Source of the DNA: Tubulanus polymorphus
Lineage: Eukaryota > Animalia > Nemertea
DNA: 64,000 nt
Assembly: GCF_964204645.1 (NCBI RefSeq)
Contig: NC_134034.1
Span: 13,839,062-13,903,061 of the forward strand
Reading direction: 5' to 3'
Each line of letters starts with the position of its first letter. Position 1 is the stretch's first letter. A model generated the notes under the pieces. It searched no databases, had not been told where the DNA came from, and saw only the letters and a list, made by a program, of their open reading frames with translations. Shown piece after piece: positions 24,401-52,513 of the stretch. The position numbers were made by a program, and so were the translations under genes.

Positions 24401-26229
24401 TTTGAGTTGGGGGGGGGGGGGGCAGAGAACCAAAAAAGGTACTGTTCCAAAATCCCCCCTAATCTCTCGATTGATATTGCTGTATTTCAGGGAGATCATT
24501 TTGTAATAAAGAACGTTACTCGAGAAGATCGAGGTATTTATCGCTGCACTGCGACTAACAACGTTCCACCTCCAAACACTAACGATATCGAATTGAGAGT
24601 ATTTTATGCCCCTTTCGCGCGTCCGTTTCGCACTACTATTGGACAGATGCCGGATAAAAACTACAAAGCTGAACTCGATTGTATCGTATCAGGTGAGAAT
24701 TGTTAAAATGTAGTTGTTTTCAATGAAAGTCGTATTGTACAACTTGTTTGTATTGAAGTACTTAACACACTAGCTGTATGAGTTACATTTTGTATTCATG
24801 GTTTAAAGCTGGTTAAAAACAAATAGATAATTAACTCAAGTTTTTTTTCATATGGGGAGGGGGCGGCGACCATATTTAGTAGGCTGAAGAATTTGAGTTC
24901 ATCCGGTTGTATGACAACTAGTGCTATGTAGCGGAATTCACTATTTGATCTACACCGAGAACCTTAGCGTCAGTTGTATATCGCTATCGCGACCCCTGGT
25001 GGTGGTTCACGCCGCGAACCGGAAACTCTCGGGACTGGATGAATATTGGTTCAGCGCTTTCTTCATCTTTATCTGTTTCAGGTTATCCGGATCCCAAAAT
25101 ACGATGGTACATGCACGGTCACGACGGTTCGAAACAGCTGATTGAACGCGACTCTAAACATTACGTCGTTGAAACGACACCGAAAGGGGCCAGCGATTTG
25201 AAACAGGATGAAAAGTGGTGCACGTTAATCATTACGAATTTACAATCGGGAAACTTTGGAAACTACAGCTGTGAAGGGGTGTCACCCCTGGGAAAACATT
25301 CGGCTGTTATAACGCTTTACAGTGAGTACGATGTTTAAACCCTCGACAGAAATACGGTGTTTCTCCTGGATCCAGTTCCACAGTTATGAGTTAGAGTTAA
25401 CTCTGAACTCAGGACCCGGTTCCACAGTTATGAGTTAGAGTTAACTCTGAACTCAGGATCTAGTTCCACAGTTATGAGTTAGAGTTAACTCTGAACTCAG
25501 GACCCGGTTCCACAGTTATGAGTTAGAGTTAACTCTGAACTCAGGACCCAGTTCCACAGTTATGAGTTAGAGTTAACTCTGAACTCAGGATCCAGTTCCA
25601 CAGTTATGAGTTAGAGTTAACTCTGAACTCAGGACCCAGTTCCACAGTTATGAGTTAGAGTTAACTCTGAACTCAGGATCCGGTTCCACAGTTGTGAGTA
25701 AGAGTTAACTGTGAACTCAGGACCCGGTTCCACAGTTATGAGTTAGAGTTAACTCTGAACTCAGGATCCAGTTCCACAGTTATGAGTTAGAGTTAACTCT
25801 GAACTCAGGACCCAGTTCCACAGTTATGAGTTAGAGTTAACTCTGAACTCAGGATCCGGTTCCACAGTTGTGAGTAAGAGTTAACTGTGAACTCAGGACC
25901 CGGTTCCACAGTTATGAGTTAGAGTTAACTCTGAGTTGAAGTTAGTTCATTTTCAATGTTTTAATTCTAGAGTCAAATTTAACTCAGAACTGTGAAACTG
26001 GACCCAGGTGAACAATCATGAGTTATATAATCCAGCAGCAGTTAATCCAAACATTATAGTTTGTATCGTGTATTAATATGTTTTATTTTCAAACTGTCTA
26101 TTTTTAGGTACACCGACGTGTCAGGGTAGAATCTGCCCGATGGAGAGTATATTGTCATCTGGTCAACGACGATTGGCTAACGGATTAATGACGTCATTGA
26201 TAGCGATAGTAATAGCTGTCGGTGTTTAA
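21423..26229 (+). CDS. Lachesin-like IgSF cell-adhesion protein: signal peptide, three Ig domains, probable GPI signal; 8 exons
   Basis: Exons about 21423-21492, 22009-22115, 23157-23241, 23535-23708, 24060-24217, 24491-24692, 25082-25322, 26108-26229. DAGKYRC, DRGIYRC..ATNNVPP, NFGNYSC; terminal CQGRIC plus hydrophobic tail. Confidence 0.85.
21558..21970 (+). repeat. 39-bp minisatellite (TCCAGTTCCACAGTTGTGTGGGTTTAATTTGACTCTGAA), about 10 copies, lachesin intron 1
   Basis: Direct reading; same family as 60590-61030. Confidence 0.92.
23838..24024. repeat. About 39-bp tandem repeat (GTTCCTGGAACGATATGCCCAATTCGCTCGGCACTAGAA), about 5 copies, intronic
   Basis: Direct reading. Confidence 0.9.
25369..26004. 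mobile_element. Harbinger-like MITE whose left 44 bp is tandemly amplified 13 times
   Basis: Left end CTG|GATCCAGTTCCACAGTTATGAGTT, right end AACTCAGAACTGTGAAACTGGACC|CAG (inverted match, CWG flanks). Only the last unit continues into the element body. Confidence 0.8.
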
Positions 26230-26835
26230 ATGATAACATATAATGATGCATTATGTTTATGATGCGATGCACGTTTTATTACAAGCGCAATTTATCTCAA
26301 GTTCAAGTTTCATCTTGTTAAATTAGGTGATCATCAGATTCTGAGATTTGTTACTAGCTCCCTGACTATTTCCTGACATACCAGTTGTTTTTTCCCCTGA
26401 CTTGATCTGCTAAGAATCCAATCAATTAACACAGGCAAACAAACTGTTCGATGTAACACGTGATCTAGCAATCGTAATAAAATAACTGACTTATCCCTGA
26501 TTTTTAGTATCTGACAAAATTCACCGACTAATCCCTGACTTTTCAAAAGAAAATTCCCTGACTAATCCCTGATTTCCCAGGTAAGTGGCGCCACCCTGAT
26601 TATCTAAAGTCAAATTGAGGTCCGAGTTAAAATTTGAATATAGAAAACAAATTGAGATTTAAATCTGATGCTAAACGTTTACTCACAGTTAAACATTAAC
26701 TCACAGTTACCAAGGATCGAGTACCGGATTTTAGTAGCTGTAATCTAGTAATGACTAGGTAATATTTGATTCTAGGATTTCTGACTAGTATTAAGTTGAG
26801 TACGTGAGAACTAGCCCCCCCCCCCCCGTTAGACG

Positions 26836-30653
<3,818 letters not shown>

Positions 30654-31239
30654 CTTTCTATAATATTCACAGAGCTTAGCCTCGTCCGTGTCGGTACTGG
30701 TAATATATAGAAATCGAGAGCATTATATCTGCATGTATGTAGGCTTAGTGTGAATATAATCAAATACACGGTTAATGATCGACCAAAGTTCGAAGCTCAG
30801 CTCTGTCGCAGTTTAACGTGCCGCCGTGTGACACTGACTCATTATCAGTCGACTGCACATAGCTGCGATACATCCATGCTGTATCCGGTCGAGTTTTCTT
30901 CTTCTGTGCGCGGCTTTCTAAGTTAATGCTGCAGTTGTATTTTCAACTGAAGCTCTGATTACAATGAATACATATTGTGTAGTCTGATATGTTGATTACG
31001 AATTAAGCACATAATGATAATAGATTTAGCAATATCATAATATTATTTTAATCATTTTATGTAGTAGTAAGATATATGGAATATTATGAACATTTGGATA
31101 TGAAATCGTAGATATCTATGATTATAAATTTTGTGACATGTACGTTGTAAGTAGATATGATGCGTGTGAATTGATAATCAATTAACGTTAAAAAGAAACC
31201 CAATATCCATAAATTACAAGCGGCTTTTGGAACCACGCT

Positions 31240-31625
31240 AATTGATAATCAAAATAGGATATAACGATATGTTGTTAACGCGTAGTATCACATTTCAATT
31301 CTGCTCACGACGGAGACCAGCTAAACGAATTAACCAGTAAGAAAATTTAAATCAAGATTTCTCAATTAATAATATGATTAAGTAAGTAACGAATTGAATT
31401 CTACTCTAGCCTTCTCCTATTTCCTTTTTTCTGCAATAAGTTTGGTATCTGTGGACGCGTGTACCATTTTTGACGCAGTTCCACAGTTAACATTTTAAAT
31501 GGAGTAAAATGGCGATTTTGATCACGACATTAAAACTTGGTAAGGGTCTACTAGTTAAAAAGTCATAGGCTGATATGCGTCTCAAGCAAAAACGTTTCTT
31601 TCTCTTTTCAGCATGCGGATCTCTA
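31240..31625 (+). pseudogene. Remnant 5' end of a fourth Ig-cluster paralogue (upstream region, acceptor, first codons)
   Basis: 31240-31520 aligns by eye with 32641-32900 upstream of copy A; CAGCATGCGGATCT at about 31609 is identical to the copy C acceptor and start. Confidence 0.6.
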
Positions 31626-31694
31626 CCATCCATCCTCGCTTACCAGGGTTTGATATCGACCTCACGAAACAAATCAACTCTAGCTAGATCCTAC

Positions 31695-31820
31695 ATGGCC
31701 GATACAACAGATCCATCTTCCTCACTCAACGAGCGAGATCAACACATCCTACGAGACGGCCTGGAAGTATAGACCCGCAAATTGGGCATGTGCTTCAAAG
31801 CGGATAAGTGATTCGTGGTT
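31695..31820 (+). mobile_element. Degenerate LINE reverse-transcriptase fragment
   Basis: Translates as DQHILRDGLEV*TRKLGMCFKADK*FV, matching DQHRLQEDLDKLSDWAKKWQMTFHPDKCVV in the intact ORF2 of this window. Confidence 0.6.
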
Positions 31821-33392
31821 AGCTCAACAACAGCTTCCTTCGATTTCATGACTGAATGTTATTTGTATTTTGAGTAACGTCGCGACTGAATTGAGGATTC
31901 TGAATGAGGCCCGTCCTAGGTACTGAGCATGGGTTTCAGAAATACAGTAGACACGAACTAGGGTGAGAGTCCAGCCAATCATTTTTGCTTGGAAATATCG
32001 CAATCGACGGAATGATGAGAAGAAAAAATTGGCTTTAATAGCATTGATAATCGATTACTAAACGGTGTAGATTACAGAAAATTCCGTAACCGGTAACACT
32101 CCAGAAGAGTCTTTTAAACTTAATTTGCAAAAAAATTTTGCTCAAAGAGTTTTATAATTAGTCCTTGTTTTTAAAAACAAAATAAATATATTGTATTACT
32201 ATAATTGTAATTACTAAATAAATGATGTTTACTCGATTCGTGTTTCTAATCTAGAGGATATCAGCGACATTCATTTTTCATTATGGCAAATAAACAATGG
32301 ATGCTTAAGTCGTACAGTAGTTGCTGGGTCCATCAAATAGTTCTGTTAACTACTATCGATCGGAACTTGCAGCCAGCAACACGTAAAAACATCATTTATG
32401 AGAAATGGAAAACGATGAACTTTGTTTGAAGCAAAATAAACCTAAGACCTAATGTAGTTGATTGATAAAAGGCCATACAGTAAAAATGTCATTTGTCGAT
32501 GCATGAATGTTATCATACGCGGCACAATGAATATAAGTGCAAGTTCAACACTTCCTGGAAATTAGGTATAGGACGCGACGCAAGAGCGACACAATCTATA
32601 TCTATAATTATTAGCGAAATCCAGAGACTGCTGATACAATAATTGATAATCAAAAATGAATCCAACCATATGTCGTTTAGTATGAAATATTATTTCAATC
32701 TTCCGGAGACCAGCAAACACAACGAGAGTGCGAGAAAATATTCATCAAATCAATTTTCTTTATCAATCAAATAATTAAGTAAGTGATGAATTTAATTGAA
32801 GTTTTTTTCTTTCTCCTGCAATAAGTTTAAGTAATTAAGTAAAGATTTTCGACGCAGTTCCACAGTTAACATTTCAATTGGACTAAAATGGTGATTTTAT
32901 ATTCAAACCCGTTCAAACCCAAACATGCTAACTTTCTTAATTTCAAACCGCTAGCCTGTGCTAACTTAATTTCGAAGAAAATTTTTCAAAAAATAACGGG
33001 TTCTCTTAAGTTTATTACTAGATTAAGTAAGTGATGAATTAAGAATTAAATTTCCCATTTATCTAATTTTAATTCTATTATTTCGCTTTCATTTTGTTTT
33101 TAATGAAAATGCATTAAGAAGCAGCCAGCTTCACGAAGAAGTTTAAGCTTAAAGCGGTTATTTCTAATTTTGTTGTCCTATAATTTGAAAACCTGAGGTA
33201 ACTAATAGCAATTACACCTTTGATCTTAACCATGATAAAGTTTTTTTTGTGAAACCGGTCGATGTGAGCGTGTGTCACGTGTCTACAGGCGCTACAACCA
33301 TTTTGGGAAGCCGACTCATGACCTTAAAGTCACGTGGTCTTGTGGTATAAATCTATTTTTTGTGAAAAATCTCAATTTTTTCAGTACTGGGT

Positions 33393-36300
33393 ATGAGGAT
33401 CTATTACGTCCAAGTACTTCTGGCGTTGGCCTTGGTCCCATTGTTTGACACCACTGGAACTCAGGTCATGACTGTAGAAAAACTTAAAAACGCTCAATGG
33501 TGGTTTGATTGCGGGGTAAGCTGGAGAGAGGGTTGTATCGGTATTATAAACTGCATCCGGTACCAAACCTCATTATATTCGACTCGTTTAAACGTATCTG
33601 TATTTTCGGAACGAGGCAATTTCAATTCAAAATTGAACTGCAAATCTACGAGGAGTTTTCTTTCAGGATCCCGGTGTTACAAACCTAAATGAAATTAAAA
33701 TAGAAAAAGACAATGAAGTCCAGGAAACAGGAGCGAACCCGACGACGACTACATTCGTCGTGGCGACAGGAACGACTGTAAACTCCCCTTACAACTCGAA
33801 TTCGGACAGAACAGCAACAGATGTCACCACCACAAGTATCCAGTACAAAATCGGTAATATAAAATATACATCAATATCATTAGAATAACCCGTACACCCA
33901 TCGTGGAGAACAGATAATAAATCAAAAACCCTCCAAGAAATAAACTTAATTTGCTGCAATGGCAGCAACTGTTATGAAATGGTATAATTATCATACCACC
34001 ATTATAGCACGGTTATAACAGCGACAGAATGAGTGACTGCTTTATTGTTCATTCACAGCTGCACAAAAAGCCGAACTATTTGACAGCGGTGTTTACTACT
34101 GTCTGATAAACAATGTACGACAACCGGCAATAACTGCTGAATTAAAAGTAACAGGTAAATCATAAGCTGATCTGAAATGAATCTAACTCGGAATCTGATC
34201 GAAAGGCTACGGAACTCACGTCAGAGTTATGTTGAACCTACACAACTATAGAACTGAATTCAAAGTTACTAATGAAACCCTCAAAACGAGAATAGAAATG
34301 TGTTCTGAGGCGAACCGTAGAACCGAGGTCTTACTCTATTATGCGTTTTGCTTATCGTGTTTTCCAGACACTCCTGTTGTCCAGTGGATCTCCAATGGAA
34401 ACGTCATCACGTCTGCAGCTACGGGCACTATTGACTTGCGAACAACCGGAAGTGCAACGACCCTCCAATGCAAGGTCACTGTTGAAAGCACGAAAGCGGT
34501 GATAAGCATTGTATCAAATGGTATTTCTAAGGAAATCAACCCGTCAGATGCTGGCTGGACTGCAACGTATCAGACCTCTGCTAACTGTCCTAACAGGTAT
34601 TAGAATTCAGTGAATTTTCACTAACAAAAGCTAATTATACCAAATGTTGACAAGAATAAACTTACTTTCCAATTTTTAAACGAATAAGAGACCAAAACTT
34701 CTGTATTCCTCAAAACTACTACTCAGTTCGACACCGACCCGGAGAAAACTTAATTGAGTGAGAATCAAGATTCTACAGTATATCTAACTCTTAGTATTTG
34801 ACTCAACTATCGGGTTGAATTTTACCTCAGTAATAGAGTTTACTGTAATTCTCGAACTGTAACTATTGAAACTATTTTCAGCACTCACTCGGGTTAGAAT
34901 TTTTTTCAGCTTCAAGTTTATTGAGTAAGGGATGGAGTTTAATGATTCTGTTGTTTTAGCAAATGCTCTGTTCAGTATGAATACACCTGGAGCGCTTGGA
35001 ACGGAAGTGCTTACGATCAATTTACCTACCAGGCGAACGGTAACGCCATCTGGTGTGCAGCAACGAATGATATCGGTTTGAAGGCGTCGAGCAGTATTAA
35101 TTTGGATGTACAATGTAAGTTTGAATATCTCGCTTACCAGGGTAGGTTTGATTATGCTTTGTTTATTTCTACTTGGCAAACTGGTCCGTGCAATTTAGTG
35201 GACTGATACGTGGATATTGTATACCTGTATCGATGGAACAAACGTAGTTTTTGGGGAAGTGTTGATAGCAGTAATGACAAGAACTCAAAGTCCCACCAAT
35301 AAAATCCGGAACTTCGAATATAAATGCATACCCCTAAAGAGCAAAGGAGATAACTGGTTTTCACCTATCTCTATTACAGACGGAATGATCAACTTCAAAA
35401 TAGCTCCATTAGTTCTGACGATCCAACAACACAACCAACCATTAACGTTCATTGCCAGTTTCAAATCGAACCCGAAAACTTGCAACATCACTTGGTACAA
35501 AACCTCCACCCAGAATCAGACATTGGACGCTACATCACTGCTCCCCGCCTACCAGTGGACAGACTCGGTAGGTAGGACTGGGGCAATCCATATAGTAGAT
35601 TATAACCTGTAACAGGTCCACGCGTCCCTGTCACAGCAGTTTGTTTCGCTGCGTGAAGTTTCTTAACCATCATTTGAAAAATATGCTGTAGTTCTATAAT
35701 GTTATATTCAACCAAGAAACAGAGGCCCCTGAGGTCTAGATATAACATTGTTCATTTTAGGTTGTCCAACAAACTTACGTATCAGTGATCATTGGCAGAC
35801 AGGCCACGAAACAAGATGAAGGGTATTACCACGCTAAATGCGGCGCTGATATTGTTACAGCTCAATTGCTGTATAAGGCGTACACCACAGGTGAGGATCC
35901 GATGGAACTAAATACCTCACTAACATACCTCACTAAATACCTCACTAATATACCTCACTAATAAACCTCAGCTTGAAACGTTTGAGCGCATTTCATAAGA
36001 CTTCTTGTATACGACATTAGCCTTTAGAAATTAAATAACGTGCGTCACGGACTCGGATCAAACCAGGCTATAATGTGATGCGGACTTGTGGAGGAAGCAT
36101 TAACTGATAATTACCTAATTTGGTTTTAACTAATACACGATGAAATGAAGTGAAATATAGGTGTCGGTTTTCGGTCATACAGGATACACGATATTGAACA
36201 TGAGAGCGATGATATTCGATTTGGTTTTGTTCCCGAAAATCATTATCCCGATGTTGAATTGGATGTCGATCTACGACGCTTATACGATTCAAAATGTCAC

Positions 36301-36442
36301 TCAACGAACAACTACAACTACAACTACAACTACAACTGCGCAAGCGCCGATTGAGCAACAACCGCTGATTGAGCAACAACCGCCGATTGAGCAACAACCG
36401 CCGATTGAGCAACAACCGCCGATTGAGCAACAACCGCCGTAA
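33393..36442 (+). CDS. Ig-cluster copy A: signal peptide, V-like Ig, second Ig, degenerate third Ig, hydrophobic motif, T- and PIEQQP-repeat tail; 8 coding exons
   Basis: Exons about 33393-33515, 33667-33853, 34059-34154, 34368-34596, 34960-35113, 35379-35567, 35761-35890, 36183-36442, phases compatible. FDC..DSGVYYC; LQC..WCAATN; ITWYK..DEGYY. Confidence 0.85.
36348..36439 (+). repeat. Coding 18-bp repeat x5 (PIEQQP) preceded by an (ACAACT)n poly-Thr run
   Basis: Direct reading. Confidence 0.9.
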
Positions 36443-37070
36443 GTAGTTGAAGAAATAATGGAATTTCCAGATGCTGTATAAGACATTATTAAAACGAACA
36501 GTGTAGATTTATCAAGGGTGCTTCAACGCCGCGTTTAGGGATTGCTATTGAAATGGCTCAAAGTTATCTATCAAAGCCGTCGAGGTTACAGTGTGATGAC
36601 ACTAAGTATCCTTCTTTCGGTATAAATAATTAATCATGTCAATCAATTCACAAATCGCTAAAAAACGAGTAAAAAAACTAATTTGTACGTTGAGATCACG
36701 TGTTCAGAAATACCGATGCTGACCCGGCCAATATATACGTGTTCACTGTCAGAAGGAAGTATATACATATAGTCTCAGCAGAGAAATTACGATTCGGATC
36801 CTTGAAACACAATAGATTTCTGGATATAGAAGTTTCTAGTTTCTATACGCCATGTTGCGAGGTCCCCGAGGTTCTCGAGGTCCCCATTTAAATCGCCCGT
36901 ACTAATTGAATACGTGGTGCATTGCTTATGAAATGACAGAACACTATAAATATCGGCCGATTAAACCTACTACTATACACTAATAGCGAAAGTTCGTGCG
37001 CCAAATTAACCTTAAAATACTATTTTTCTCGTTGCATTTGAGTTTTTTTGAAGAAGAAAGTCCGTCATGG

Positions 37071-39680
37071 TTGTTTTATGGCACCGGATCTCAGGTCACG
37101 ACTGTGCAAAAACAAGCGAACGCCGTATGGTCGTTTGAATGCTGGGTAAGCGGAAAGAAAATCTAAATTGCTGTAAGACTGTTGGTCCAAGCAATATAAA
37201 CCTTAGCGAATTTGTTGGAATTTTCTTTTCAGGCTGGTACTGTGACAAGCTTAGATCAGTGGCAAGTAGAAAAAGTCAATGAAGTCCAGGAAACAGGAGC
37301 GAACCCGACGACGACTTCATTCGTCGTGGCGACAGGAACGACTGTAAATTCCCCTTACAACTCGAATTCGGACAGAACAGTAACAGGCGTCGGCACTACA
37401 AGGATCACGTATAAAATCGGTAAATTTATTACTAAGAATGACGCGATATCGTGTGGCAAACGAGCATCCGCCCTGACCCATCTACATCGTCGTGAATGCG
37501 TTTAAATCAATGGATTCTGGTGATACAAGTAGCAACGAACGGTTCCACCTATGGCAAGCAAAGATCGATCGTACGGTGTCTTTCGTTCGGATTCAGTTTG
37601 TCCTGTTGTGTTTGCTTGTTGTATCGAGATTGAGTTTGCTTGTATCTTTTTGTTCATTCACAGCTGCTCAAAAAGCCGAACTATTTGACAGCGGTGTTTA
37701 CTACTGTATGATAAACAATGTACGACAACAGCCCCTAACTGCCGAATTAAAAGTAACAGGTAAATTAAGTGAATTATGTAATGATCTGAAGCAAGTGAAA
37801 TGATACCGATAATTGGACCCACAACTGTAGAACAAAGAGTCAAATTAAAAACAAATAACTGTGGGCCACTGCTTATCGTGTTTTCTAGACACTCCTGTTG
37901 TCCAGTGGATCTCCAATGGAAACGTGCTCACGTCTGCAGCTACGGGCACTATTGACTTGCGAACAACCGGAAGTGCAACGACCCTCCAATGCAAGGTCAC
38001 TGTTGAAAGCACGAAAGCGGTGATAAGCATTGTATCAAATGGTATTTCTAAGGAAATCAACCCGTCAGATGCTGGCTGGACTGTAACGTATCAGACCGGC
38101 GCCAACTGTCCTAACAGGTATTAGACTTAAGTGACTTTTCCTTATAATGCTTAGTGTTTGAGCCGCAACGCTAGTCCGAACGCTGTGGCCGCTTCGATGT
38201 TTAGTACTGGAATCCATCACTGGTCCAGGAGACACGCATTCGCTTAACGAGTGATGTGGTATCGAGGTAATTAGATGGGTCTTAATGATTCCAGAATAAA
38301 TCTTCTGCTGTAAATGTATTTTTCACCTAAATAATTCAATTAACGACGAGATATTTTTGCGAGTAACGTTTTGTTTTTGCAGCAAGTGCCATGTTCAGTA
38401 TGAATACATCTGGAGCGCTTGGGACGCGAATGCAAACGCTTACGATCAATTCACCTACCAGATGAACGGTAACGCCATCTGGTGTATAGCTACGAATGCA
38501 ATGGGTTTGAAGGGGTCCAGCAATATCAATTTGGACGTTCAATGTAAGTATCTCTCGTTTCCAAGGTGTCGGTCGGGAAGTGTTTCGGTTAGTCTGATGC
38601 AAAGGTTTGCTATTTCTGATTCATATCAAATGTTTGATGCAAAATGTAGCCTAATCTTTCCATAAATCCTGACCCCCGAAAGCAACGATACACCCTCTCC
38701 CCACCCCAATGGAAATGATAGCACGTCGTTTTCTGCCTATTACAGACGGAATGACCAACTTCAAAATAGCGCCGGAAGTTCTGACAATCGAACATCGAAA
38801 CCAACCAATGTCGTTCGTTGCCAGTTTCAAATCGAACCCGAAAACCTGCAACATCACTTGGTACAAAACGTCTACCCACAATCAGACATTGGACGCTACA
38901 TCACTGCTCCCCGCCTACCAGTGGACAGACTCGGTAGGTAGGACTGGGGCAATCATACAGTAGATTATAACCTGTAACAGGTCCACGCGTCCCTGTCACA
39001 GCAGTTTGTTTCGCTGCGTGAAGTTTCTTAACCATCATTTGAAAAATATGCTGTAGTTCTATAATGTTATATTCAACCAAGAAACAGAGGCCCCTGAGGT
39101 CTAGATATAACATTGTTCATTTTAGGTTGTCCAACAAACTTACGTATCAGTGATCATTGGCAGACAGGCCACGAAACAAGATGAAGGGTATTACCACGCT
39201 AAATGCGGCGCTGATGTTGTTACAGCTCAACTGGTTTATAACGGCATTGAACCACTGATCCCATGGCAGCTATACGCTAACGGTAAGAATGAACAAGAGA
39301 TGTTGTCCTTGCCTTCGCTAGCCTACAAAGACCTATCCTTATGTAGACTTCCGGAAAAGATGGCTACCTCTATGTGATTCATTATGACGTCATTGAATAC
39401 CTAGCTTATAGTGCCCCTTCGAGAAAAGATGATTGGTTGATTTCACATAAGAGGCGTACTAGTAATAATCTGCAATTGAAATATTGCCTTTATTACAGGA
39501 TCCACGATATTAGACATTAGAGCGCTCATATTCGATTTGATTTTGTACCCGAAAATCATTGTACCGATGGTTAAACAGATGCCGGCCTATCAGGATTATA
39601 TAACTCAACTTGCAGCTCAGCAACTACAGCAATCTCAGCAGCAACCAGCTCAACCTGCTCAACCGCCCCCAGCGCCATAG
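37071..39680 (+). CDS. Ig-cluster copy B: same 8-exon layout, but no in-frame ATG or full signal peptide visible (pseudogene or unseen upstream exon)
   Basis: LFYGTGSQVTTVQKQANAVWSFECW|gtaag; exons about 37233-37420, 37664-37759, 37889-38117, 38383-38543, 38745-38933, 39126-39282, 39499-39680. Upstream frame closed by TAA/TAG at 36981-36986 without ATG. Confidence 0.75.
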
Positions 39681-39907
39681 CCGGTTCAGCAGCAACCAGC
39701 AGCTCACCAAAAACAGACTCAGCAATAACTGGTTTTTAGGAACTTCGAATTTGTACTTAAATTAAATGCTTGTGCTTGACATCCAATAATAGAACAGAAT
39801 CAGATTTTCCAATTTTCTTCCTTGTTTCAATTATTTTGATTCGTATCCATTTAAAAGAATGCACCCGTGTGTCCGGATGTCGGATCCATAACCATTGTGG
39901 ACCCAGT

Positions 39908-39975
39908 GCCTCTCCGTCTCCGTCTCCGTCTCCCTCTCCCTCTCCCTCTCCCTCTCCCTCTCCCTCTCCCCCTCT
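39908..39975. repeat. (CTCCGT/CTCCCT)n pyrimidine hexamer repeat
   Basis: Direct reading. Confidence 0.9.
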
Positions 39976-41286
39976 ATATATTTCATTGGGGAACTGTTGA
40001 ATGATGAAGCACTTTTTGCATTTTTTCACTTTTATCAATATTTTCCAAAGCTAACAAAATGAGTGTTGCGTGCATTTAAACGACTTAATGACTGGCGTAG
40101 ATCGCGCTGATGCTGTAGCCAGGTTTGACTAGTTTGCCAGCCATCCATCGGAAATCAAGGTTATGAATCTGTCACCTGTCAGATGACCACGCCCACACCT
40201 ACACGTCAGGCACTGGCGGCGGATTCTCGTGGTTCCGGTAGGTACTCGTATCAACCCGATTCCACTGTGATATTTATTTTGCACGACTTGTATAATTGTA
40301 TGCATGTTTTAGACACGGATTGTTACAATATCATTTACCGTGATGTCAGGCCTTTGTATCCAGTTAATCTCTACGGGGTCTCCACCATAAGTGCTCTGGG
40401 CTTCCGGACTTATAGACAACGCAGTAAAAACGTTTTTCTGTCACGTCGATTATATGTATAAAGAACAACCAGGGTTTGTAGTAGTCGTAGGTGCGAAAAT
40501 ATGAAATACATCCTAACTTGTCCCAAAAATGTTTAGGGCACCACCTACATTGCTTTATACTGGCAACGGCACCGGATCAGTCTAAACTCATTTGAGTTCC
40601 ATAGACGGCCTGGCGACTTCAGACCAATCGATGCTTATTTTTGTTCTTAAATGGTTCTACAGCCGATTTAGGTGCTACTTCAGACCAGTGGGATACGAGA
40701 TAGGTTATAACCAATCAATTACGTAACCACTCTGGGACCAATCTGATTACATAGCGCTTGATGCCGTTACGGTATAGCTGGGTCCGCGGAACGATCAGAA
40801 ACCAATTAATATAAAATCGGAATTCTATATCTGCATATTGTTAGCGGGACCCACTTATAGAATGAGTAATTGATCATACAAATATATTTAACCATACGTT
40901 GTTTAGTTTCAAATTTCAATTTATCATTCTGTACTCACCGACCGTATTTACGTTACACAAACAAGAACGAATGCTCAAGAAGGTTTGAAGAAGAGAATAA
41001 ATCAACATTTATTAATTTACCATAGAATTAAGTGATGAGTTAAATCGAATTTTCCGCATCTATTTTCTAATTATTTTGATTCGTTTTTTTTTTTTACAAT
41101 TTCTTTGATAGAAATTAAAAATGATTTTGTGAGGTCATTTCGGACTACAAGTCGCACAGTAATGAGTTCCTCTCAAGTTACAGTGTATCGGTTGATTAGT
41201 CAAACTCAAAACGTAAACCTGGGTCCTGGTAAAAATGTATGAATGCATTAAACACGTTAAGCAAATATATTTTCTATTTTTACAGC

Positions 41287-44200
41287 ATGCGGATCTTTTC
41301 CTCGCAAACGATTCTGACGTTGGCCTTGATCTGCCTGTTTGACGTCACCAGATCTCAGACCACGACTGTACAAAAACTTGCAAATGCCGAATGGTCGTTT
41401 GAATGCTGGGTAAGCTGGAAATCTATAAATTGATATTTGTTAGTCATATTTCTCAGCGGCATATCAAACCCGACGACATCACTCTACGCCGTGTTCAAAA
41501 ATCACAAATTGCGAAATTGAAAAATGAACTACTGTTGCGTTGGTCTCCTCTCTATTTTGCTTCGGGTACCGGAGTATCGAGTGGATTAAACCCTTAGAGG
41601 ACAAACCATTAAATTCGATTTAACATAGCTTTATTTTTTTCCATCTCAAACACGCTCAACATGGCGTCCACGCTTCCTCTGCAAATCATCACGTGACACT
41701 TACGTCACACAATCAATATTACTTTATAACAACTATAAATACCAGGCATTAGACATTTTATCAGCAAACTTCAAATCCACGCCCTTCATTTTGACTAAAA
41801 TGAGTCTAAAATGAGCGACAAATAGCAGACAATATACGATTTAACACCTTCCTCAACAAAATGACGAATGTTAGAGACGAGTATTACTGAAGAGTTAGAT
41901 AATACCCGACATTTGAACCCGAGGTTTGAATCTCTTTAGTTGCCGGCTATTGCTTCTCATCATAATGTGTACATGAAAAATAACAATACAACAAGATATA
42001 GTATTTGAAAGGTAAAACTTGTTTATGTGACGCACGAGTTTTCGCTAGTAGAAGGTTCATCAGGTGAATGAGTGGCCTGATGAAGCTATCACCTATTAGA
42101 GAAAACTCCAGAATTGATTGAACACGTTAACAGGCTTCTCAAAGATTGAAAAATGAGGATTGTTGGAATTTTCATTCCAGGATTCGACTGCAACAAACCT
42201 GAATGAACTATTAATAGAAAAAGACAATCAATACCAGAACTCACCAGGAAACCCTGCGACGATTACATACGCCGTGGCGACTGGAACGACTGTTGCTACA
42301 GCTTATGCCGCGAATTCAGACAGAACAGCGACAAGTATCGGCACCACGAGAATCAAGTATACAATCTGTAAATAATTGAGAAACCGTGTATCTAAAAAGA
42401 TACCAAATTCGATTAAATCGGTGGTAACCTCAGTGAACGTAATGACGCGGTCCCCTGACTGCAGTCCACAGCGGATCACTACGATAATAAGTTAGAAAAT
42501 ATATCAAGACAGACGGAAAAAACTGTCGGCTTCCCAAAAAACATATGGGAAACACTTCCAGCTGGCGATACTTATCAATCTCCGAACAACAATTATTTGC
42601 TGCAATGGCAATTTCTATAAATTGTGTTGTGAGTTAAAAGCGAAAAAATAGCAGATCATTTGTTGTTGTTGTATTTTTCTTTCACAGTGGCGCAAAAAGC
42701 TGAACTATTCGACAGCGGGGTTTACCACTGTAAGAAAGGCGGCAGCAGAATAGCGTCCATCACCGCTGAATTAATAGTAACAGGTGATTTATCTGTGTCT
42801 TATAACTGATTCTACTACTTCACTCTCCTGTTCTAGAAATGGCAATCGCGGGAGAAATTTCGGACATTTTGTATTTGATTTTAAAAAAAATATATATATT
42901 ACCAGAATAAATGTGCCTTTATTTCGGTAATACCCGGTGTTGGGGTCGTCCAGAAGAGATTTCAACCAGATGACATCGCTAGTCTGGAATATCCTCTCGG
43001 CGAGTATGACGGTTTGCAGGGATATACGGATCTAATAAATGGGAATATTATAGGATTTTCAACACTGCGATGAATTGATTCTTTGTGAAGAGACATGATA
43101 CAGATATTTCCTCGGGATAAAATGACCGCTTCCTGGCCTTAGCAGGGAAGACAACGAGCGGCGATTGGATAGATCTGCCAGCATCGAACGCACCAGTTTG
43201 CGCTATAGGCTAATGCGTTGTCTTTTTTTCCAGACACTCCTGTTGCCCAGTGGATCTCCAATGGAAACGTGCTCACGTCTGCAGCTACGGGCACTATTGA
43301 CTTGCGAACAACCGGAAGTGCAACGACCCTCCAATGCAAGGTCACTGTTGAAAGCACGAAAGCGGTGATAAGCATTGTATCAAATGGTATTTCTAAGGAG
43401 ATCAGCTCGACGGATACTGGCTGGACTACAACGTATCAGACCGGCGCCAACTGTGCTGATAGGTATTAGGCAAATATAATTCATACGCAGCTTAACATTC
43501 TTTGTAAAATGCCTGCCTTATTTGCAATTTCATGAAAAATATAGCTGCAAAAGCAGCGATAACGGGTTTTCTGCCTAGCTACATCCTTATTATGCGAACT
43601 AAAGGGAATTATTGAAACCTATCACGATATGACCCTCAACAACTTATCTTTGAGATCGCGTTTGAACGGACGCTATACTCACTAGCTATACGTGAACCGA
43701 ATCAAGCTGAAATCTCAAAGATAAAATTCTTACTAACAGCAAACGGCAGTCAAAAACTTGTTACTTTTTTCTCAATTTCGGAAACTCAACTACGCCTGCA
43801 AGGAGTCGAATGAAGGTGTCTAAAATATCCAGTGAATTTGCTAAAGATCGGTAACGTACTTAAGTAGAAATCAAATGTTCATAATTACCATTTCAAGGCC
43901 TTGGCACAATGTGCAAAATGGTGGGAATAAATTATTGTATTTACACTTGAAATGATTATCGAAACTTGCGGCGAATTTACGACGTAGAAAAACATATCGA
44001 TTTATTGAATGGACCAAAATTACGATGTTTACGGTACAACACGATTGCTGTACAACCTTTACCGAGTAAAGCGAGCGGCCTGAACTGGATAAATAAACGA
44101 TACATGTTCAAAACAAATAATTTACCAGAATCTATTGATAAAAAATTAACCACGCCAAGGACGTGATTATGATACCAAGACCTCGTCGGCCCAGAAAAGT

Positions 44201-46381
44201 AGCCCCAACCGTAACCCTAACTGGCTCGTAACCCTAACCCTAGATCGCTTGTAACCCTAACCCTAGCAGGATCCGAACCTGCAATCTCCGGCATGCCAGG
44301 AGTGCACGCTACCCACTAGGCCACTGAGCTGTACTGATAGAATGAGTTTGTAAATATGTCCGGTCAGTGTGGTGACCAGTCACGCGTGGTCGACTCTATT
44401 CACCAAAGGCACCCTCTCATATGTTATTTAAAGATAAATGGATATCCTAGATTCCATAAGAATTCTCGTATTTTTCAACTTCTGTGAAGTTTTGCTTGAA
44501 CATATTCGACAAAAGCTTATATTTCTCTTGCTAATTCGGCCATTTTATTCACAGCTGTCATCGTCAACATATTGATGGAGTTAACGTAGATCTAAGTGAC
44601 CTTATCTGTTAATTACATCGTACTATACAAAGACAATGTTTTCTAGTGAAAATAGTGTGAAAAAACGGGGCAAAAATAATAATCTGGGGCATGATAATAG
44701 AGTTTTCTGTGAAATAACAAAAAACCCTAAAAAGTTGTCAAACTTGTTTATTTCATGAGAAACACGAATTGATACAAACTCCAGGTTGTACCTATATTGC
44801 CAACATCGACTGTACCGAGATTTACAGTATTTCTCGAACTCAACTCAAAATGTAACCCCGATTCGGGGTAGAATTTTAATTGTATCACCTTATACAAGAG
44901 ACAGGGTGTTATTATGTTTGCAGCAAGTGCAATGTTCAGTATGAATACATCTGGAGCGCTTGGGACGCGAATGCTAACGCTTACGATCAATTCACCTACC
45001 AGATGAACGGTAACGCCATCTGGTGTATAGCTACGAATGCAATCGGTTTGAAGGCGTCGAGCAGTATTAATTTGGACGTACAATGTAAGTTTGAATATCT
45101 CGTTTACCACGGTCATCTTCATCCGTCAAGGGATTCGGACCCACTAAGCTAAAGCCGTTCGGGGAGCGATACCGGACCCCTGGCAAGCGAGGATGACTAG
45201 GGTATAGATTTCAATAGAAACTGGCGCGTCAATATAAGCGCCTTCGAGTACATGGAGAAATAATCCTTGTATTTTGTTTTCACCTATCTCTATTATAGAC
45301 GGAATGGCCAACTTCAAAATAACTCCATTAGTTCTGACGATCCAACAACACAACCAACCATTATCGTTCATTGCCAGTTTCGAATCGAACCCGAAAACTT
45401 GCAGCATCACTTGGTACAAAACCTCCACCGCAGATCAGACATTGGACGCTACAGTGCTGCTTCCCACTGACCAGTGGACAGACTCGGTACGAAGGACCAT
45501 ATTACCTTCTCATACATTCACTTCATGTTTTGTGAAGTCTTAATTATGGTGTATGGTAGTCAATCAGTTTGTAAATATGTATCAAATTAACAATTCTGAA
45601 CACACGTGAGACATTGGTGAGTTGGGAAATGTCTGGCACCGCGGATTAGTTGCTCAAAACTTAGTAAAGGATAAGAAACCTATTTTTGAGCAACCTGAAG
45701 TCACGAGTGCGTGTATTAACAACTTCAGATTTATAAGTTCATTTTAGGTTGTCCAACAAACTTACGTATCAGTTATCATTGGTAAACTGGCCACGAAACA
45801 AGATGAGGGGTATTACCACGCTAAATGCGGCGCTGATGTTGTAACGGCTCAATTGGTTTATAACGTGATTTCACCACCAAAACCGCATGTGAACTACACC
45901 GCCGGTAGGGAAGAGTCATTGATAGTCTTACCTCGACCCGTGCGCGCACAACCTCTGATAGATAGACCTCCAGGGCTACCTGTGTGTACAAAACCCCTCA
46001 TATACCTGGCGTATTAAATACCCTTCATGAGAAAATTATAGATTTTAAGGAAAATATCATCTTAACTGGTAACGTCTGTTCAGAAATTAGTTAGTTTAAT
46101 AAAACCACTGAGGAGTGTGTGGAGGAAGCATTATGACCGATCAAGGCCATTTATATTAAGTGATAATATTGAATTGAAAAAGATGTCTGTTTATTACAGG
46201 TTACACCATGTTCAATATGAGAGCGCTCATATTCGATTTGATTTTGTACCCGAAAATCATTGTACCGATGGTTAAACAGATGCCGGCCTATCAGGATTAT
46301 ATAACTCAGTTTGCGGCTCAGCAACTACAGCAATCTCAGCAGCAACCAGCTCAACCTGCTCAACCGCCCCCGGCGCCATAG
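41287..46381 (+). CDS. Ig-cluster copy C: signal peptide, three Ig-like domains, hydrophobic motif, Q/P tail; 8 coding exons
   Basis: MRIFSSQTILTLALICLFDVTRS leader; exons about 41287-41409, 42181-42367, 42688-42783, 43234-43462, 44924-45084, 45299-45486, 45748-45904, 46200-46381. Confidence 0.85.
44205..44331 (-). mobile_element. tRNA-derived SINE-like head followed by short TTAGGG blocks
   Basis: Minus strand AGCTCAGTGGCCTAGTGGGTAGCGTG..GCAGGTTCGGATCCTGC: A box, B box and T-arm present; acceptor stem poor, so not called a tRNA. Confidence 0.6.
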
Positions 46382-46980
46382 CCGGCTCAGCAGCAACCAG
46401 CAGCTAACCAAAAACAGACTCAGCAATAACTAGTTTTATTGACAAGAACTTTGTACTTATTAACAACTGCTTTAGCTTTACACCCACTATGACCAACTGC
46501 AACGAGTGTGTTTATTATATAACCTTTTCAAAAGCATGGACACCTAAGACTGAGTTACTACTAGCGATACCTGGTGGATCCTTGCTTGCGGGAATATCTT
46601 TGTTTTTAACCACTCATTTTTATTCAGAAAACAAAAGAACACAAATACAAGATTAACGTCACAAAACGCCTCGAAGGTGGCATTGTGTACAAGGAAACAT
46701 ATAGATTTAATATAACTTTAAGCAGGCCGAAAAAACCAGTGATCTATGATTACAATGTATACAACGCATTGTGCAAAATTAAAATTTTGATAAGTGCGCC
46801 GCGGTCTAGCGATATCATCCATATTTGAATCGTTTGAAAACCCCTTTACAAGGTTCATTTGATCGACAACTGACGATTGGAACCCGTATCGCGACCGCAT
46901 TCGTACTGTCAATCAATTTCTTGTGCATCGACATCGCGATAGCTGTCGTTACCCGGCGCTTCACCACATTGTATGACATC

Positions 46981-49900
46981 TCAAGCGACGACTATAGGTG
47001 GCGTTTCCGATTGTTGCAATTCCCACATAGACGCGTACACGTCACCAGCAGCTAGTAGTTCCTCGTGTCTGAAATGAGAAATAAACAAATAAATAATAAC
47101 GCTTATCTAAAATAGTATCTCTCTTAAATCAACTGACGTATTTCAACACGTTCACTGTCGCAACCTCTAATACCGGTTATATCGCTATTATACATACACA
47201 GGGTCAGACCTAAGAAATGAAAGCCACTTGCCCGGGGGGCAAGCATATCTGAAATTACGCTTGCCCCTCCAAAAGCTACTTGCCCTTCACAGGCAGTCCG
47301 ATTGGTGGAACTATCATCCGTTGTATCGATTGGGGAAATAGCTTTTGACATAAAATTGCACTAGCCCGGAGGACAAGTGATAATGAAAACCGACTTGCCC
47401 TGATGATAATATACTTGTCCCGGGCAATCGGACAAGTGCTTAGATCGCACTCTGCATACATGTAGTTTTAGTATGAGAAATGGAGTCTATTTCAAAATCA
47501 AAGATTCTTCGCCTTGCGGGCGGCCGCCGCGTGCTCAAAGGGATTACATATATAACGTGATAAAAGGTCAGAGATTGATTTAAAAACACAGTTCCCTATT
47601 AGAGTTATAGTATCCTCACCGTCCTCGCTCAACTATCCTGCCGTTTTTAAGGACGAGTATTTGATCAGCGTGGACGACCGTCGACAATCGATGAGCGACT
47701 ATAATCGTAGTACGATTCTCGCAGATATTTGACAGTGACGTCTGGATGGCCCGTTCTGTTTGAGTATCTAAAGCAGACGTAGCTTCATCTAATAGAATAA
47801 TCGCTGGTGATTTCAGTATCGTTCTCGCTATGGCAACGCGTTGTTTCTCGCCTCCACTAAGTTTTAACCCTCTCTCACCGACTTGGGTTTCATATTCTGT
47901 CGATGATTGGAAAAGAAAGAAGTACTGCTGTAACATTTGATGATAGCCTATATAACACAGATAAAGGGAGGGTCAGAGAGGGAGAGATATGATAAGAGTG
48001 GCAGTTTTAAACTTACGTTTCGGGAAGCAGATTATTTTCGGATGAATATTGGCGGCTTCGGCCGAATCGATGACGTCATCATCATCTGCCGTCACTCTGC
48101 CGTATCTGATATTGTATTTGATATCAGCGTTGAATAGATTGGTGTCTTGAGGAACTACACCGATATTCATCCGTAGAGATTTCTGAGTCACCTAAATTGA
48201 ACGTTATTTGAACGAATTTTACGTAGGTTCGAGTCCCGAATTTGATATGATATTTTCTCCATAAAACATTTCTTTATGATTAACAAAATATTGATTATAC
48301 AAAATATATGCAAATTATCTGTCTGGATTCCAGTATTCTACCTTTGTTATATCCTGTCGATCGATTTTGATCGATCCTGACTCTGCCTCGTAGAAGCGAA
48401 ATAGCAGTTTGATTAAGGTACTTTTACCGGATCCGGAAGGTCCAACTAACGCGTATGTCTCACCAGGTGGAACACTGAATGTTATATCCTTTAAAACAAG
48501 CTCCCTGAGTAAAATTACATAAATATCTCATTTATTTTGTTCGCTCAAATTAGTTAACTTATGCTACGGTCGCTTTTTGGAAGTAGAAAAATATGATTTT
48601 TGAAAATCGGTTGATTCAAACTTATATATAAAACTATAGAAGCAATGGCCGACAGATGGCGCCAATTAAGCTGACCTTTGATTGTACCGGAAGCAGACGT
48701 CCTTGACATCGATACGACCTTCAACCAGTACGAGATCTCGCGCATTCTCGTCGTCGACGATATCTTGTTTCTCGTTCATTAGGTCGAACATGTTTTCCAT
48801 ATCGATAAACGATTGTTGTAGAACTCTGTTTATGGAAATTTACATAATATTCAATGAAAACAGTTCAAACATAGGATATACGCCTCACTTTAACCCTACC
48901 CTCATGCGCGGATCCAATGGGAAGGGTGTGTACGTCTTCTATTAAAATTGTGTCCCCTTCACAAAAAAACTTGATCCGCCACGGTGTCTCTTACTTTCAC
49001 CAATAAACTTGTTGTACCCAGATGGCCCTGCCCAGTGTAGTGCACCACCTTACCTCTTAGTACCTCTGAAAAAGGTTCCCAAGTACTTTTTCCCCGAGAC
49101 GTTTGTTTGAGCTGAAGAGAGGGCCAATCTACACAGTACTACGGTACGTACCTGTATTGTGTACCGAAATAGTTGAGAGGAGTGTAAAGTTGTCTGATGT
49201 AACTAACAAACAGAACGAAATCTCCAACAGTGAAATCGCCTTCATATACGATATTGTGAACCATCATAATGGATCCTAACAAGAATCCGCAGTGGATCAC
49301 TATATTCTGTATGTTGTTGAGTAAGATCACTGTAGCATTCGACGTCCATTCGGCACTCTGAAAATACATTTAAAACTGGTACTGGTCGTAACTGTCTTAG
49401 AGTCCATGTTGGGAAAGCAGTTTATAGTTTCTTTGTAAACCCCTTTTTAATAACAGTTTAGGTGGGAGAGAACCCAGTGTACCCACCTGAAACCCCCACC
49501 TGAAACCACCACCTGAATCCCCACAGTTTACCCACCTGAAACCCCCACCTGAAACCCCAGTGCACCCACCTGAAACCCCAGTGTACCCACCTGAAACCCC
49601 CACCTGAAACCACCACCTGAATCCCCACAGTTTACCCACCTGAAACCCCCACCTGAAACCCCAGTGCACCCACCTGAAACCCCAGTGTACCCACCTGAAA
49701 CCCCCACCTGAAACCACCACCTGAATCCCCACAGTTTACCCACCTGAAACCCCCACCTGAAACCCCAGTGCACCCACCTGAAACCCCAGTGTACCCACCT
49801 GAAACCCCACAGTGCACCCACCTGAAACCCCCACCTGAAACCCCACAGTTTACCCACCTGAAACCCCCACCTGAAACCCCAGTGCACCCACCTGAAACCC

Positions 49901-52513
49901 CAGTGTACCCACCTGAAACCCCACAGTGCACCCACCTGAAACCCCCACCTGAAACCCCCACCTGAAACCCCACAGTGCACCCACCTGAAATCTATCGATA
50001 GATAGTGAATATGTTTCTAATTCGAACTCCTCGCCGCAGTAATATTTCACTGTTTCGTGGTTTATCAGTGAATCAACTGCTCTAGTGTTACTATCATTCT
50101 CACATTCATTCATAGTTCGGCGGAATTTCGATCTCCATTCGGTCATTCCAATTGTCGTAGCTACAATTTCAGTCGACAACAACATAGTTTTATCCCTAAG
50201 AAGTTTAACGAAGGCGAATGGATCTTTCCAGAAAAGATAGACTTCCATAGATTCCAACAGGCATGATAACCTAAGCGCTGTTTATAGTATTATTTCATGA
50301 TAAGCGGTCAGCTTATAATTACGCAATTTAGAATGATGTGATAAGTTTGTGATGTCATGGATGGATTTGTGAAACTTTCTAGAAGGATCCACTTACTGAT
50401 ATAGATTAACATAGTGGCAGCAACGATCAGCGCGTACCACGCGTTAAAAGCCATAGCGAAATAAACGATAGCGATCGTAATATCGACCACGGTGGGCAAC
50501 AATTTAAAAAGAACTTTACTGAAAAATAGAAATCAAAATGTACTTAATATCGGTTGAATGATTTATCGCGATGACTCCGGTGTGGAAGACTCTTTACTCT
50601 AATATCAGATTGATGCTGTTTGTTCCGCGATCCAGGATTTTAAGAACTTCGCCCGTATTCCTGTTCAGATGCCAATTCAACGATAATCTACAAAAGAAAA
50701 GATTGGCCAAACAGTTCGCTTTTATAAAGGTCTCGTGCAGATTCTAACGTGCGCGAGTCAGCGAAATAAGACAAAGTGTTGTATGTTCGGTCGGTTTTAC
50801 CCGTGTAGATGGTCGAACAGTTTCGTCTGTATCATTTTCGTCGTAAATTGTTCGATGCGAATCCAGAAAAATGATCGAATATTATTGAGCAGACCCATTG
50901 TACCTGAAAGTATCCAAAATACGCACTAATAATAATATCTCTGCGTCGATTCGATACCGGTCACCTCCAGTAATCCACTTCTAATGTTCTGTTTACAATC
51001 AGTAAAATCTTCTTGGCCCATTTTACATAAAGCGATACTCACCCCCTCCTCCGCTACCTTGTAAGAATTTCAAAAACACAAACAAGCTGATGAGACCCCA
51101 TCTGAAATTTGCCTGTGATCCCAGCGTCAAATAGTCGACTGTCAAATACATAATTCAATTATCTTACTCCGCTATTGCTAAGTTGAAAGGAGGTGTTTGG
51201 AGCAGTTAACCAGAAAACCCGGCGCACTCACCTGATTTTTTGTACGTTACCGGAACTAAAAGATTAACAACTCGTCCGGCGATTAGTACTAACATACACA
51301 GGAGAACCCTCATCTGCAGCAGCAAGTGACCCTTGGGCCAAACGAAAGGGTAAATCATACGTATTTTAGACACAATACCAGCCCAAGTCGATCGCGATAG
51401 TGGCGCTTCTTGAAAGCCGTTATCAGTGATGTCATTTTGGATTAGCTACAATGGAGAAGATAATGCACATCTCGCTACAATGGACAAGACGACGCTCAAA
51501 GCGGAACGGATAAATCGCTTACCGCGGAACGGATAAATCGCTTACCGCAGCTTGTTCCTCGTCAGCATTGATCAGCAGCCTGCGGTCTGGCAGGATTCTT
51601 CGCGGAATCGCTGGAGATTTACGCGCCAAAACGAATATTGTAAACGTGAATGTCGTTGAAATGTATCTGGCCAGCCATAGACCGAATCGCACCTTGTTTA
51701 AACTGCTATGTTTAAAAGAAGGAATTGTTCTTAATAAAGTCCACATCAGTTATTTTGTTCAAGAAGAGGGTGGGTGGATTGGAATATCTTTGGATTTTTG
51801 GATGATAAAAAACATTTTGGTCGGTGGGTCAGTATAAAAATAGAAAATGTTTGACGACCCTAGGAAGCGCAGAAGATACAGTGGTCGCAGTGTTAAAACC
51901 ATCGCTTTAATTGTATCGGGAACTATCTACGACCCTACAGAAGCTCTGGAAAATAGAAATAGCGTATTAAAACTCATTAAGCCTACCCAGCAAGGTTCCA
52001 CCACCATAACGGACTCATCCAGTTTATAAATGTCAAATTTTCTGACAAAAAACACAGCGACCAAAAAACCAATAATTTCATCCCGTGTCCAGCTTGCCTC
52101 TCTTGTCGGGCACGATGTCTCTCTTGGAAAATGAAGCCTATAGAACCAGCCCAGCTGAAAGTCCGGGTCACTGTCGCTAGTATCTGATATCCGTATATCG
52201 TTTTACTCCCTGTCGCCATGGCTACGGTTATAATATTCCCGAAGACGCTTTCGATCACCATGGCAACGCTGACGATTATTTGGAAAATGAATAATAAATT
52301 AGTCGACGGTGGCGCCATCACTCGGGCTGGCGATACTAGACGAGTATCGGCATCGCAACATTTGATCCTGATGAATTCAAAGAATGCCGATAAAAACATG
52401 GCGCTAAACACCGTTGTGGACGTCACGGTTTGCAGGAAACACGGTGAAAATCCATTTTGAATCCACGGTTCGGTCAGATTTTCACCAGCCGGGCAAAATG
52501 ATCCCATCAACAT
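46981..52513 (-). CDS. ABCB6: ABCB6/HMT1-type ABC half-transporter with TMD0 extension
   Basis: N-terminal FCP..W...GFSPCF TMD0; [13 protein letters not shown]; [13 protein letters not shown]; Walker A GPSGSGKS; VVPQDT; [21 protein letters not shown]; [11 protein letters not shown]; AHRLST; stop TGA 46981-46983. Confidence 0.93.
47199..47454. mobile_element. MITE-like element in the last ABCB6 intron
   Basis: Imperfect TIRs CAGGGTCAGACCTAAG / CTTAGATCGCACTCTG, repeated ACTTGCCC motifs, CATACA on both flanks. Confidence 0.5.
49473..49991 (-). repeat. Compound minisatellite built on TTTCAGGTGGG with about 104-bp higher-order period, starting at an ABCB6 exon-intron junction
   Basis: Direct reading. 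Confidence 0.93.

Follow-up and report, generated by a model that had tools for sequence, protein, structure and literature searches.

Proteins of the IgLON, lachesin and DIP type carry a signal peptide, three immunoglobulin (Ig) domains of which the first is V-like, and a glycosylphosphatidylinositol (GPI) anchor. The Alr genes of Hydractinia, members of the Ig superfamily (IgSF), occupy 41 loci and code for single-pass transmembrane proteins that have one exon for each domain and an Fn3-like spacer, with alleles numbering tens to hundreds; the complex also contains pseudogenes, some of them expressed, and some gene models lack a signal peptide (PMC9546547). The VIgL proteins of snails (FREP, CREP and GREP) require a C-terminal lectin-type domain (PMC5433772). 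In the copepod Tigriopus, the GOT1Sd/GOT1Sr and GOT1p1/p2 genes undergo exon-limited gene conversion and have unalignable introns, mosaic alleles and a decaying copy (PMC3728101), and interlocus gene conversion between the paralogues col-12/col-13 and fog-2/ftr-1 of Caenorhabditis has been reviewed (PMC3966223). Here we describe three tandem Ig-like genes, A, B and C, in a 64,000-nucleotide stretch of the genome of the ribbon worm Tubulanus polymorphus (NC_134034.1, positions 13,839,062 to 13,903,061 of the forward strand; hereafter the window). The explanation that we favour, with a probability of roughly 0.6, is that they represent a lineage-restricted, secreted three-Ig family arranged as an old tandem array under gene conversion.

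The window lies on contig C10 of a 268-Mb, 77-contig genome, and the genes were modelled by self-comparison and by hand. All three are on the plus strand, with eight coding exons each and GT-AG introns in phases 0,1,1,2,1,0,1 (Table 1). The exon layout, described previously as common to all three genes, is complete in A and C; B has no in-frame ATG and no signal peptide. As in the GOT1 and Caenorhabditis paralogues, the shared tracts are mostly exonic, the introns cannot be aligned, an occasional tract runs over a short intron, and one copy is decaying. Unlike those cases, exchange takes place among three genes, in every pair, and these genes are Ig-like; the decaying copy has no head, and a head-like stub that matches this gap (Z) lies beyond its neighbour. 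The cluster resembles Alr in its tandem, highly divergent IgSF genes and non-canonical cysteines, but it consists of three copies, splits each domain over two or three exons, and has neither a transmembrane helix nor Fn3. It resembles the snail VIgL proteins in its probable secretion, N-terminal Ig domains and variable N-terminus, but has no C-terminal fibrinogen, C-type lectin or galectin domain, and three Ig domains rather than one or two. We conclude that the cluster belongs to neither group and works like any old tandem array under conversion; as such it illustrates interlocus gene conversion, an ordinary mechanism, cleanly and on a small scale in an undescribed protein family.

A preliminary description of this DNA had noted that the closest partner of each gene switches along its length. 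Of 233 exon columns that are polymorphic, A pairs with B in 100, B with C in 68 and A with C in 51. The pattern changes 79 times along the exons, whereas 20,000 permutations give 140±7 changes (p<1e-4). Tested separately, A=B, B=C and A=C each have a longest run that is significant (p<=5e-4), and patterns are unevenly distributed over exons (chi-square p=1.5e-13). Read from the 5' end, exon 1 has B close to C, the middle of exon 2 and exon 3 have A=B, and the core of exon 4 unites all three; exon 5 passes from B=C to A=C and exon 6 from A=C to A=B, after which A=B holds in intron 6 and exon 7 and B=C in exon 8 and the untranslated region (UTR). The five tracts of the preliminary description were all recovered, at 97-98% rather than strict identity, one with its register off by one. 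Exon 4, which had been called near-identical in the three genes, is 93-97% identical between copies and contains a 127-bp tract without any difference. As had also been reported, divergence is greatest in domain 1 and at the exon 7/8 junction, and the introns barely align, with short similar patches only, apart from intron 6 of A and B. Intron 4 of C contains, at 44200-44330, a short telomere-like repeat run beside transfer RNA-like sequence resembling a short interspersed element (SINE).

Selection on the protein cannot by itself explain this mosaic, because intron 6 is 99% identical between A and B (one substitution and one indel) and the ~32 synonymous sites of the 127-bp exon 4 tract show no differences, which has a probability of 1e-4 to 2.5e-3 at gene-wide synonymous rates (17-25% among copies). 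The notion that B is a single-crossover hybrid of A and C is ruled out by at least six switches and by the A=C tracts, and cDNA-mediated conversion is unneeded, since intron 6 is part of a tract. Identity is clustered in tracts that include synonymous and intron sites and that conflict in their partners. Because a single crossover and protein selection both fail, and assembly collapse is unlikely (see below), repeated short-tract ectopic gene conversion is, on strong grounds, the best reading of the patchwork, as had been proposed.

We propose that tandem duplication happened long enough ago that the introns no longer align, and that later ectopic conversion in the germline copied tracts of ~30-400 bp among neighbours in all three pairings. 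Such tracts would lie almost only in exons because only exons remain similar enough, with one crossing the short intron 6. The net effect would be to homogenise domains 2 and 3, with shuffling as a by-product.

Protein searches were run exon by exon, and the joined models were used for translation, alignment and estimates of the ratio of nonsynonymous to synonymous substitution rates (dN/dS). Exon 3, within domain 1, encodes the D-x-G-x-Y-x-C motif characteristic of Ig folds (as DSGVYYC), although the C-strand tryptophan is not evident; the domain matches the Pfam V-set profile at an E-value (E) of 0.03, below the curated cut-off, and among PDB entries exon 3 matches contactins and Dscam (best E 1.4e-5, summed over repeats). 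Exon 4 had 12 weak matches (27-37% identity) among 1.8 billion representatives and none in the PDB. Seven of the ten matches scanned were Ig_2-repeat proteins, the rest being ankyrin or repeat noise; the top matches are multi-repeat proteins, mostly metagenomic, which we take as fold-level similarity only. For exon 6, the matches to Pfam Ig_3 (E 0.053), PD-1 (E 0.18, with alanine where the B-strand cysteine is expected) and Atlas C2/I-set clusters (0.83-0.87) were all below threshold. Domain 3 lacks the B-strand and F-strand cysteines and has another pair, Cys298 and Cys353 (A numbering). Phase-1 introns border each Ig-like domain. A reasonable reading of these motifs, domain borders and profile matches, the latter below curated thresholds, is that each gene encodes a V-like, a C2-like and a third, non-canonical Ig-like domain, in line with the three-Ig layout first suggested.

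The predicted A and C proteins begin with a hydrophobic, signal-like stretch, as judged by hydropathy. No transmembrane helix was found in A, B or C by insertion scale or hydropathy. Exon 8 contains a hydrophobic stretch (Kyte-Doolittle 1.6-1.7), which is interrupted by arginine, aspartate, proline and lysine and followed by 35-65 polar residues forming a glutamine/proline-rich tail, with a threonine run in A; its best window scores about +6 on a crude insertion scale, compared with 0.7 for a G protein-coupled receptor (GPCR) control. The stop codon lies 59-85 residues into exon 8, with no Pfam match to fibrinogen, C-type lectin or galectin, and no lectin or signalling module was found in the cluster proteins. 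Secretion is the most likely fate, a conclusion in which we place moderate confidence. In A, the threonine run is accompanied by an 18-bp coding repeat in five to six copies (36341-36439) that is confined to its tail; the glutamine/proline tails of B and C are different.

DNA searches and exon-wise protein searches of the genome detected no close copies beyond A, B and C, and a single weak match on contig C6. This match proved to be a distant relative, which we modelled without locating a signal-peptide exon. All seven of its intron phases are common to the cluster, and its exon lengths are close to those of the cluster (172/187, 81/96, 232/229, 131/155, 185/188 and 130/130 for relative/cluster). 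Similarity is significant in exons 3, 4 and 6 (shuffle p 0.0005-0.02), and domain 3 has the same alanine-for-cysteine change and extra cysteines. Its C-terminus is hydrophobic (1.7 on the insertion scale) and typical of a GPI signal. Because this relative combines a shared layout with a GPI-like end, the genes of the cluster appear to be a secreted branch of a small family of membrane-anchored proteins. Profiles that included the relative found no further convincing members in the genome, a lower bound on family size; a match on contig C5 (L043) contains a stop and looks like noise.

Exon-wise searches, which are weak for short exons, found no orthologue outside this genome (best E 5e-8, with exon 4), in keeping with the earlier statement that the family could not be recognised. 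Word searches, with exon 4 and with a profile of exon 6, were blank among proteins of similar length, the range that they cover, and are silent on full-length kin; comparing the joined models with 13 retrieved proteins added nothing. Literature searches on Tubulanus polymorphus with Ig, and on secreted Ig proteins of nemerteans, found nothing. The cluster would thus represent an undescribed, probably secreted Ig-like family in a little-studied phylum, tied by its distant relative to a GPI-type ancestor.

Copy B would be mis-modelled as an intact gene in routine annotation. Exon 1 similarity is missing from the first 48 coding bases of B and starts at 37071. Upstream of this point there is no ATG in frame before a stop, no signal peptide and no promoter homology; the sequence does not resemble the regions upstream of A or C. 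A promoter-like and 5' UTR-like region without a gene body, stub Z, lies on the far side of A. Its upstream part is 67% identical to the A upstream region (32640-32898; E 7e-31) and 60% identical to that of C (40800-41077), and since it has only two DNA matches in the whole genome it is not a dispersed repeat. Past ~14 C-like coding bases, Z runs into unrelated sequence with a stop after 24 codons. The content of Z is approximately what B is missing, minus about 35 bases. Contigs from DNA run X1 bridge Z to the A upstream region and the end of A to exons 1-2 of B, and one contig (36410-37306) spans the A-B junction with 0 differences; the Z-A-B arrangement is therefore unlikely to be a misjoin, with the caveat that X1 may be the source sample. 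A second haplotype in X1 shows 25 differing sites and 6 gap positions over the 1.7 kb of 31460-33169 (~1.5%).

Two histories could account for the loss of the B head: A with its flanks may have come to lie inside exon 1 of B, in which case Z would be the head of B, or a four-copy array may have suffered two separate deletions. Transposon capture of A was rejected, as neither terminal repeats nor a target-site duplication connects 31.6 kb with 37.07 kb, and so was splicing of Z to B across A, for which no joint was found in four runs and for which the Z frame yields no signal peptide. That Z is a decayed full copy is not convincing either, given a match of only 15 bp to intron 5 of A that is weaker in the other allele.

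B appears to be transcribed and spliced, because a 502-nucleotide contig from run X4, whose library type is not on record, carries the differences of B and runs through exons 5-6-7 with two GT-AG joints: all 12 of its differences from A in exon 5 and all 4 in exon 7 match B exactly, as does its loose end. We suggest that B persists as a transcribed copy whose frame may be kept open partly by conversion. In exon 6 the same contig differs from A at 22 sites, versus 18 for the reference B, and a DNA contig of the same sample (S2) over 35454-35640 shows 8 substitutions and no gap relative to A, where the reference B would give 5 and one gap; this DNA contig fits none of the three reference types. 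Because both contigs deviate from the reference B, they suggest a second B allele differing by ~4 bases in exon 6, drawn from at most two samples. In another S2 contig, which has 7 differences from A, an A/B-type intron 6 is followed by a C-type end of exon 7. A graph jump via a 35-bp stretch shared by B and C would give 5 differences and a converted C allele with a breakpoint near 35800 would give 7; since difference counts and not letters were compared, a converted allele is only suggestive.

Domain 1 of A, B and C shares 59-75% of its amino acids, and domains 2 and 3 share 83-91%; dS is 0.22-0.62 and 0.09-0.29, respectively. The per-domain check of dN/dS proposed in the preliminary description gave 0.46-0.73 for domain 1 and 0.33-0.51 for domains 2-3, below 1 in every Ig domain, and domain 1 was not significantly different from the others (Fisher p 0.2-0.5); a value of 1.1 was seen only in the A-B short-tail comparison, over few sites. 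Domain 1 has mostly been converted less often, and three-sequence dN/dS, with its low power, gave no sign of positive selection.

Taken as a whole, the history that we favour would begin with a small, lineage-restricted three-Ig family, in which a GPI-like membrane tail survives in the distant C6 relative. The cluster branch would have no membrane anchor, its amphipathic segment and glutamine/proline-rich tail most likely belonging to secreted proteins. These may act as an extracellular adhesive or binding component of matrix, mucus or tube, although the case for a structural or adhesive role is weak. Several points weigh against this explanation. The Ig assignment is built on sub-threshold matches, and secretion was judged from hydropathy alone. 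The highest dN/dS is that of domain 1, as is often the case for binding domains that evolve under diversifying selection, and averaging over three sequences gives little power. A second haplotype appears to differ within conversion tracts. No spliced contig of A was seen, the C locus lay outside the stretch compared, and gaps were uninformative.

Foremost among the alternatives is a polymorphic recognition system, immune or self/non-self, with headless B as donor, allelic mosaics and balancing selection, which we regard as a minor possibility. A V-like domain 1 that is the most divergent part of the protein would suit it, as would the variant B allele, the S2 contigs outside the reference types and a copy that is headless yet open and transcribed. 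However, there are only three copies, dN/dS does not single out domain 1, the A=C tracts mean that donors other than B exist, lectin, transmembrane and signalling parts are all absent, flanking polymorphism is ordinary (1.5%), and the hybrid contig is partly explicable as a graph jump. The mosaic pattern is silent on function, because the same pattern has been published for a metabolic enzyme (PMC3728101). The earlier suggestion of a family diversified in the immune sense finds no support in three close copies, one of them headless, with dN/dS below 1 and conversion that mostly homogenises, nor does the comparison with FREP/VIgL-like or Alr-like systems hold, given the missing lectin domain and transmembrane helix. 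An immune reading of the cluster is unsupported but keeps a small probability; of the roles first offered, secretion is probable and adhesion a weaker suggestion. The more specific idea of a secreted recognition protein, with alleles actively reshuffled by two intact genes and a headless transcribed donor into individual-specific mosaics under balancing selection, we consider less likely again. The locus would matter more if population data showed many selected mosaic alleles, as the literature searched contained no conversion-diversified recognition molecule for ribbon worms; a population study would be most worthwhile for the transcribed copy without a head and for the signs of allele-specific tracts.

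Gamete or mating proteins, too, commonly occur as tandem copies that undergo conversion and change fast at the N-terminus. A secreted egg-coat, sperm-binding or cocoon protein would agree, on general knowledge, with a fast-evolving, lineage-restricted, secreted product with a glutamine-rich tail, and with the failure to find an orthologue. We give this only a slim chance, as dN/dS does not exceed 1 in the Ig domains.

Slightly more remote is the idea that A, B and C are membrane-bound adhesion molecules of the IgLON/lachesin/DIP type, with the hydrophobic stretch of exon 8 serving as a membrane or GPI anchor. The signal peptide, the three-Ig layout with a V-like first domain, a GPI-like end in the C6 relative and a lachesin-like gene ~8 kb upstream all invite the comparison. 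Unlike that family, the cluster proteins lack both canonical cysteines in the third domain and have no terminal GPI signal; the exon 8 stretch is broken by charged residues and proline and trailed by a polar tail, no sequence match was found, and the lachesin-like neighbour differs in its intron positions and has canonical cysteines.

An assembly artefact, through collapse or haplotype switching, is very improbable: several tracts are identical over more than 100 bp, but they are short, have their own few differences and lie between unique flanks, X1 contigs match unique stretches with 0-1 differences, X1 depth climbs with copy number (~30-35 where the sequence is single-copy, 52 in the A=B tract and 84 in the tract common to all three; indicative only, not a copy number, and X1 may be the source sample), and the spliced contig from another sample unites B-specific exon 5, the A=B part of exon 7 and the end of exon 7 specific to B. 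Both contigs and depth speak against the collapse raised as a possible objection in the preliminary description.

Table 1. Positions of the genes, shared tracts and related features (window numbering unless a contig is named).
Feature	Position	Strand	Partner	Remarks
Gene A	33393-36442	+		455 amino acids (aa), intact; open frame, all introns GT-AG; signal peptide, three Ig-like domains, amphipathic segment, threonine run, 18-bp glutamine/proline repeats (predicted)
Gene A exons	33393-33515, 33667-33853, 34059-34154, 34368-34596, 34960-35114, 35380-35567, 35761-35890, 36183-36442
Gene B	37071-39680	+		Headless; open frame of 424 codons starting in exon 1 remnant
Gene B exons	37071-37145 (remnant), 37233-37419, 37664-37759, 37889-38117, 38383-38543, 38746-38933, 39126-39282, 39499-39680
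Gene C	41287-46381	+		440 aa, intact; modelled by hand
Gene C exons	41287-41409, 42181-42367, 42688-42783, 43234-43462, 44924-45084, 45299-45486, 45748-45904, 46200-46381
A=B region, domain 1	33711-34154	+	37277-37759	Middle of exon 2 and exon 3; intron 2 excluded
Three-way identical tract	34407-34533 (A)	+	37928-38054 (B), 43273-43399 (C)	127 bp
A=C region	35072-35479	+		Exon 5 end with first 29 intron bases, and first half of exon 6
A=B tract	35514-35850	+	38880-39215	Exon 6 end, whole intron 6, most of exon 7; 257-bp exact match
B=C tract, exon 5	38391-38502	+	44932-45043
B=C tract, exon 8 and 3' UTR	39519-39788	+	46220-46489
Preliminary A=B tract	33711-33813 (A)		37278-37380 (B)	100/104 columns identical; register off by one, 37277
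Preliminary A=B tract	35455-35870 (A)		38820-39235 (B)	407/417 columns identical
Preliminary B=C tract	38378-38500 (B)		44918-45040 (C)	120/124 columns identical
Preliminary B=C tract	39518-39730 (B)		46219-46431 (C)	206/213 columns identical
Preliminary A=C tract	35072-35132 (A)		45042-45102 (C)	60/61 columns identical
Stub Z, promoter/5' UTR-like	31176-31519	+		Similar to A and C upstream regions
Stub Z, start	31584-31627	+		Splice acceptor, ATG (31613), first ~14 coding bases like C exon 1
Dispersed short repeat	36970-37040	.		Just upstream of B exon 1 homology start; six other places in genome
Distant relative (L040)	C6:4686349-4690289	-		Modelled; signal-peptide exon not located

The cluster is flanked directly upstream by a flavin amine oxidase gene (spermine-oxidase-like; 27000-30670, minus strand) and directly downstream by an ABCB6-like transporter gene with an MTABC_N domain and an ABC ATPase exon (47616-52513, minus strand). 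The lachesin-like three-Ig gene (~23000-26230, plus strand) has canonical I-set matches, a hydrophobic end and minisatellites in its introns. Further upstream on the plus strand are a single-exon rhodopsin-family GPCR of 358 aa (19087-20163) and an apparently intact retrotransposon of the long interspersed nuclear element (LINE) type (11806-16737), in which two upstream open reading frames accompany one of 1069 aa that encodes an endonuclease/reverse transcriptase.

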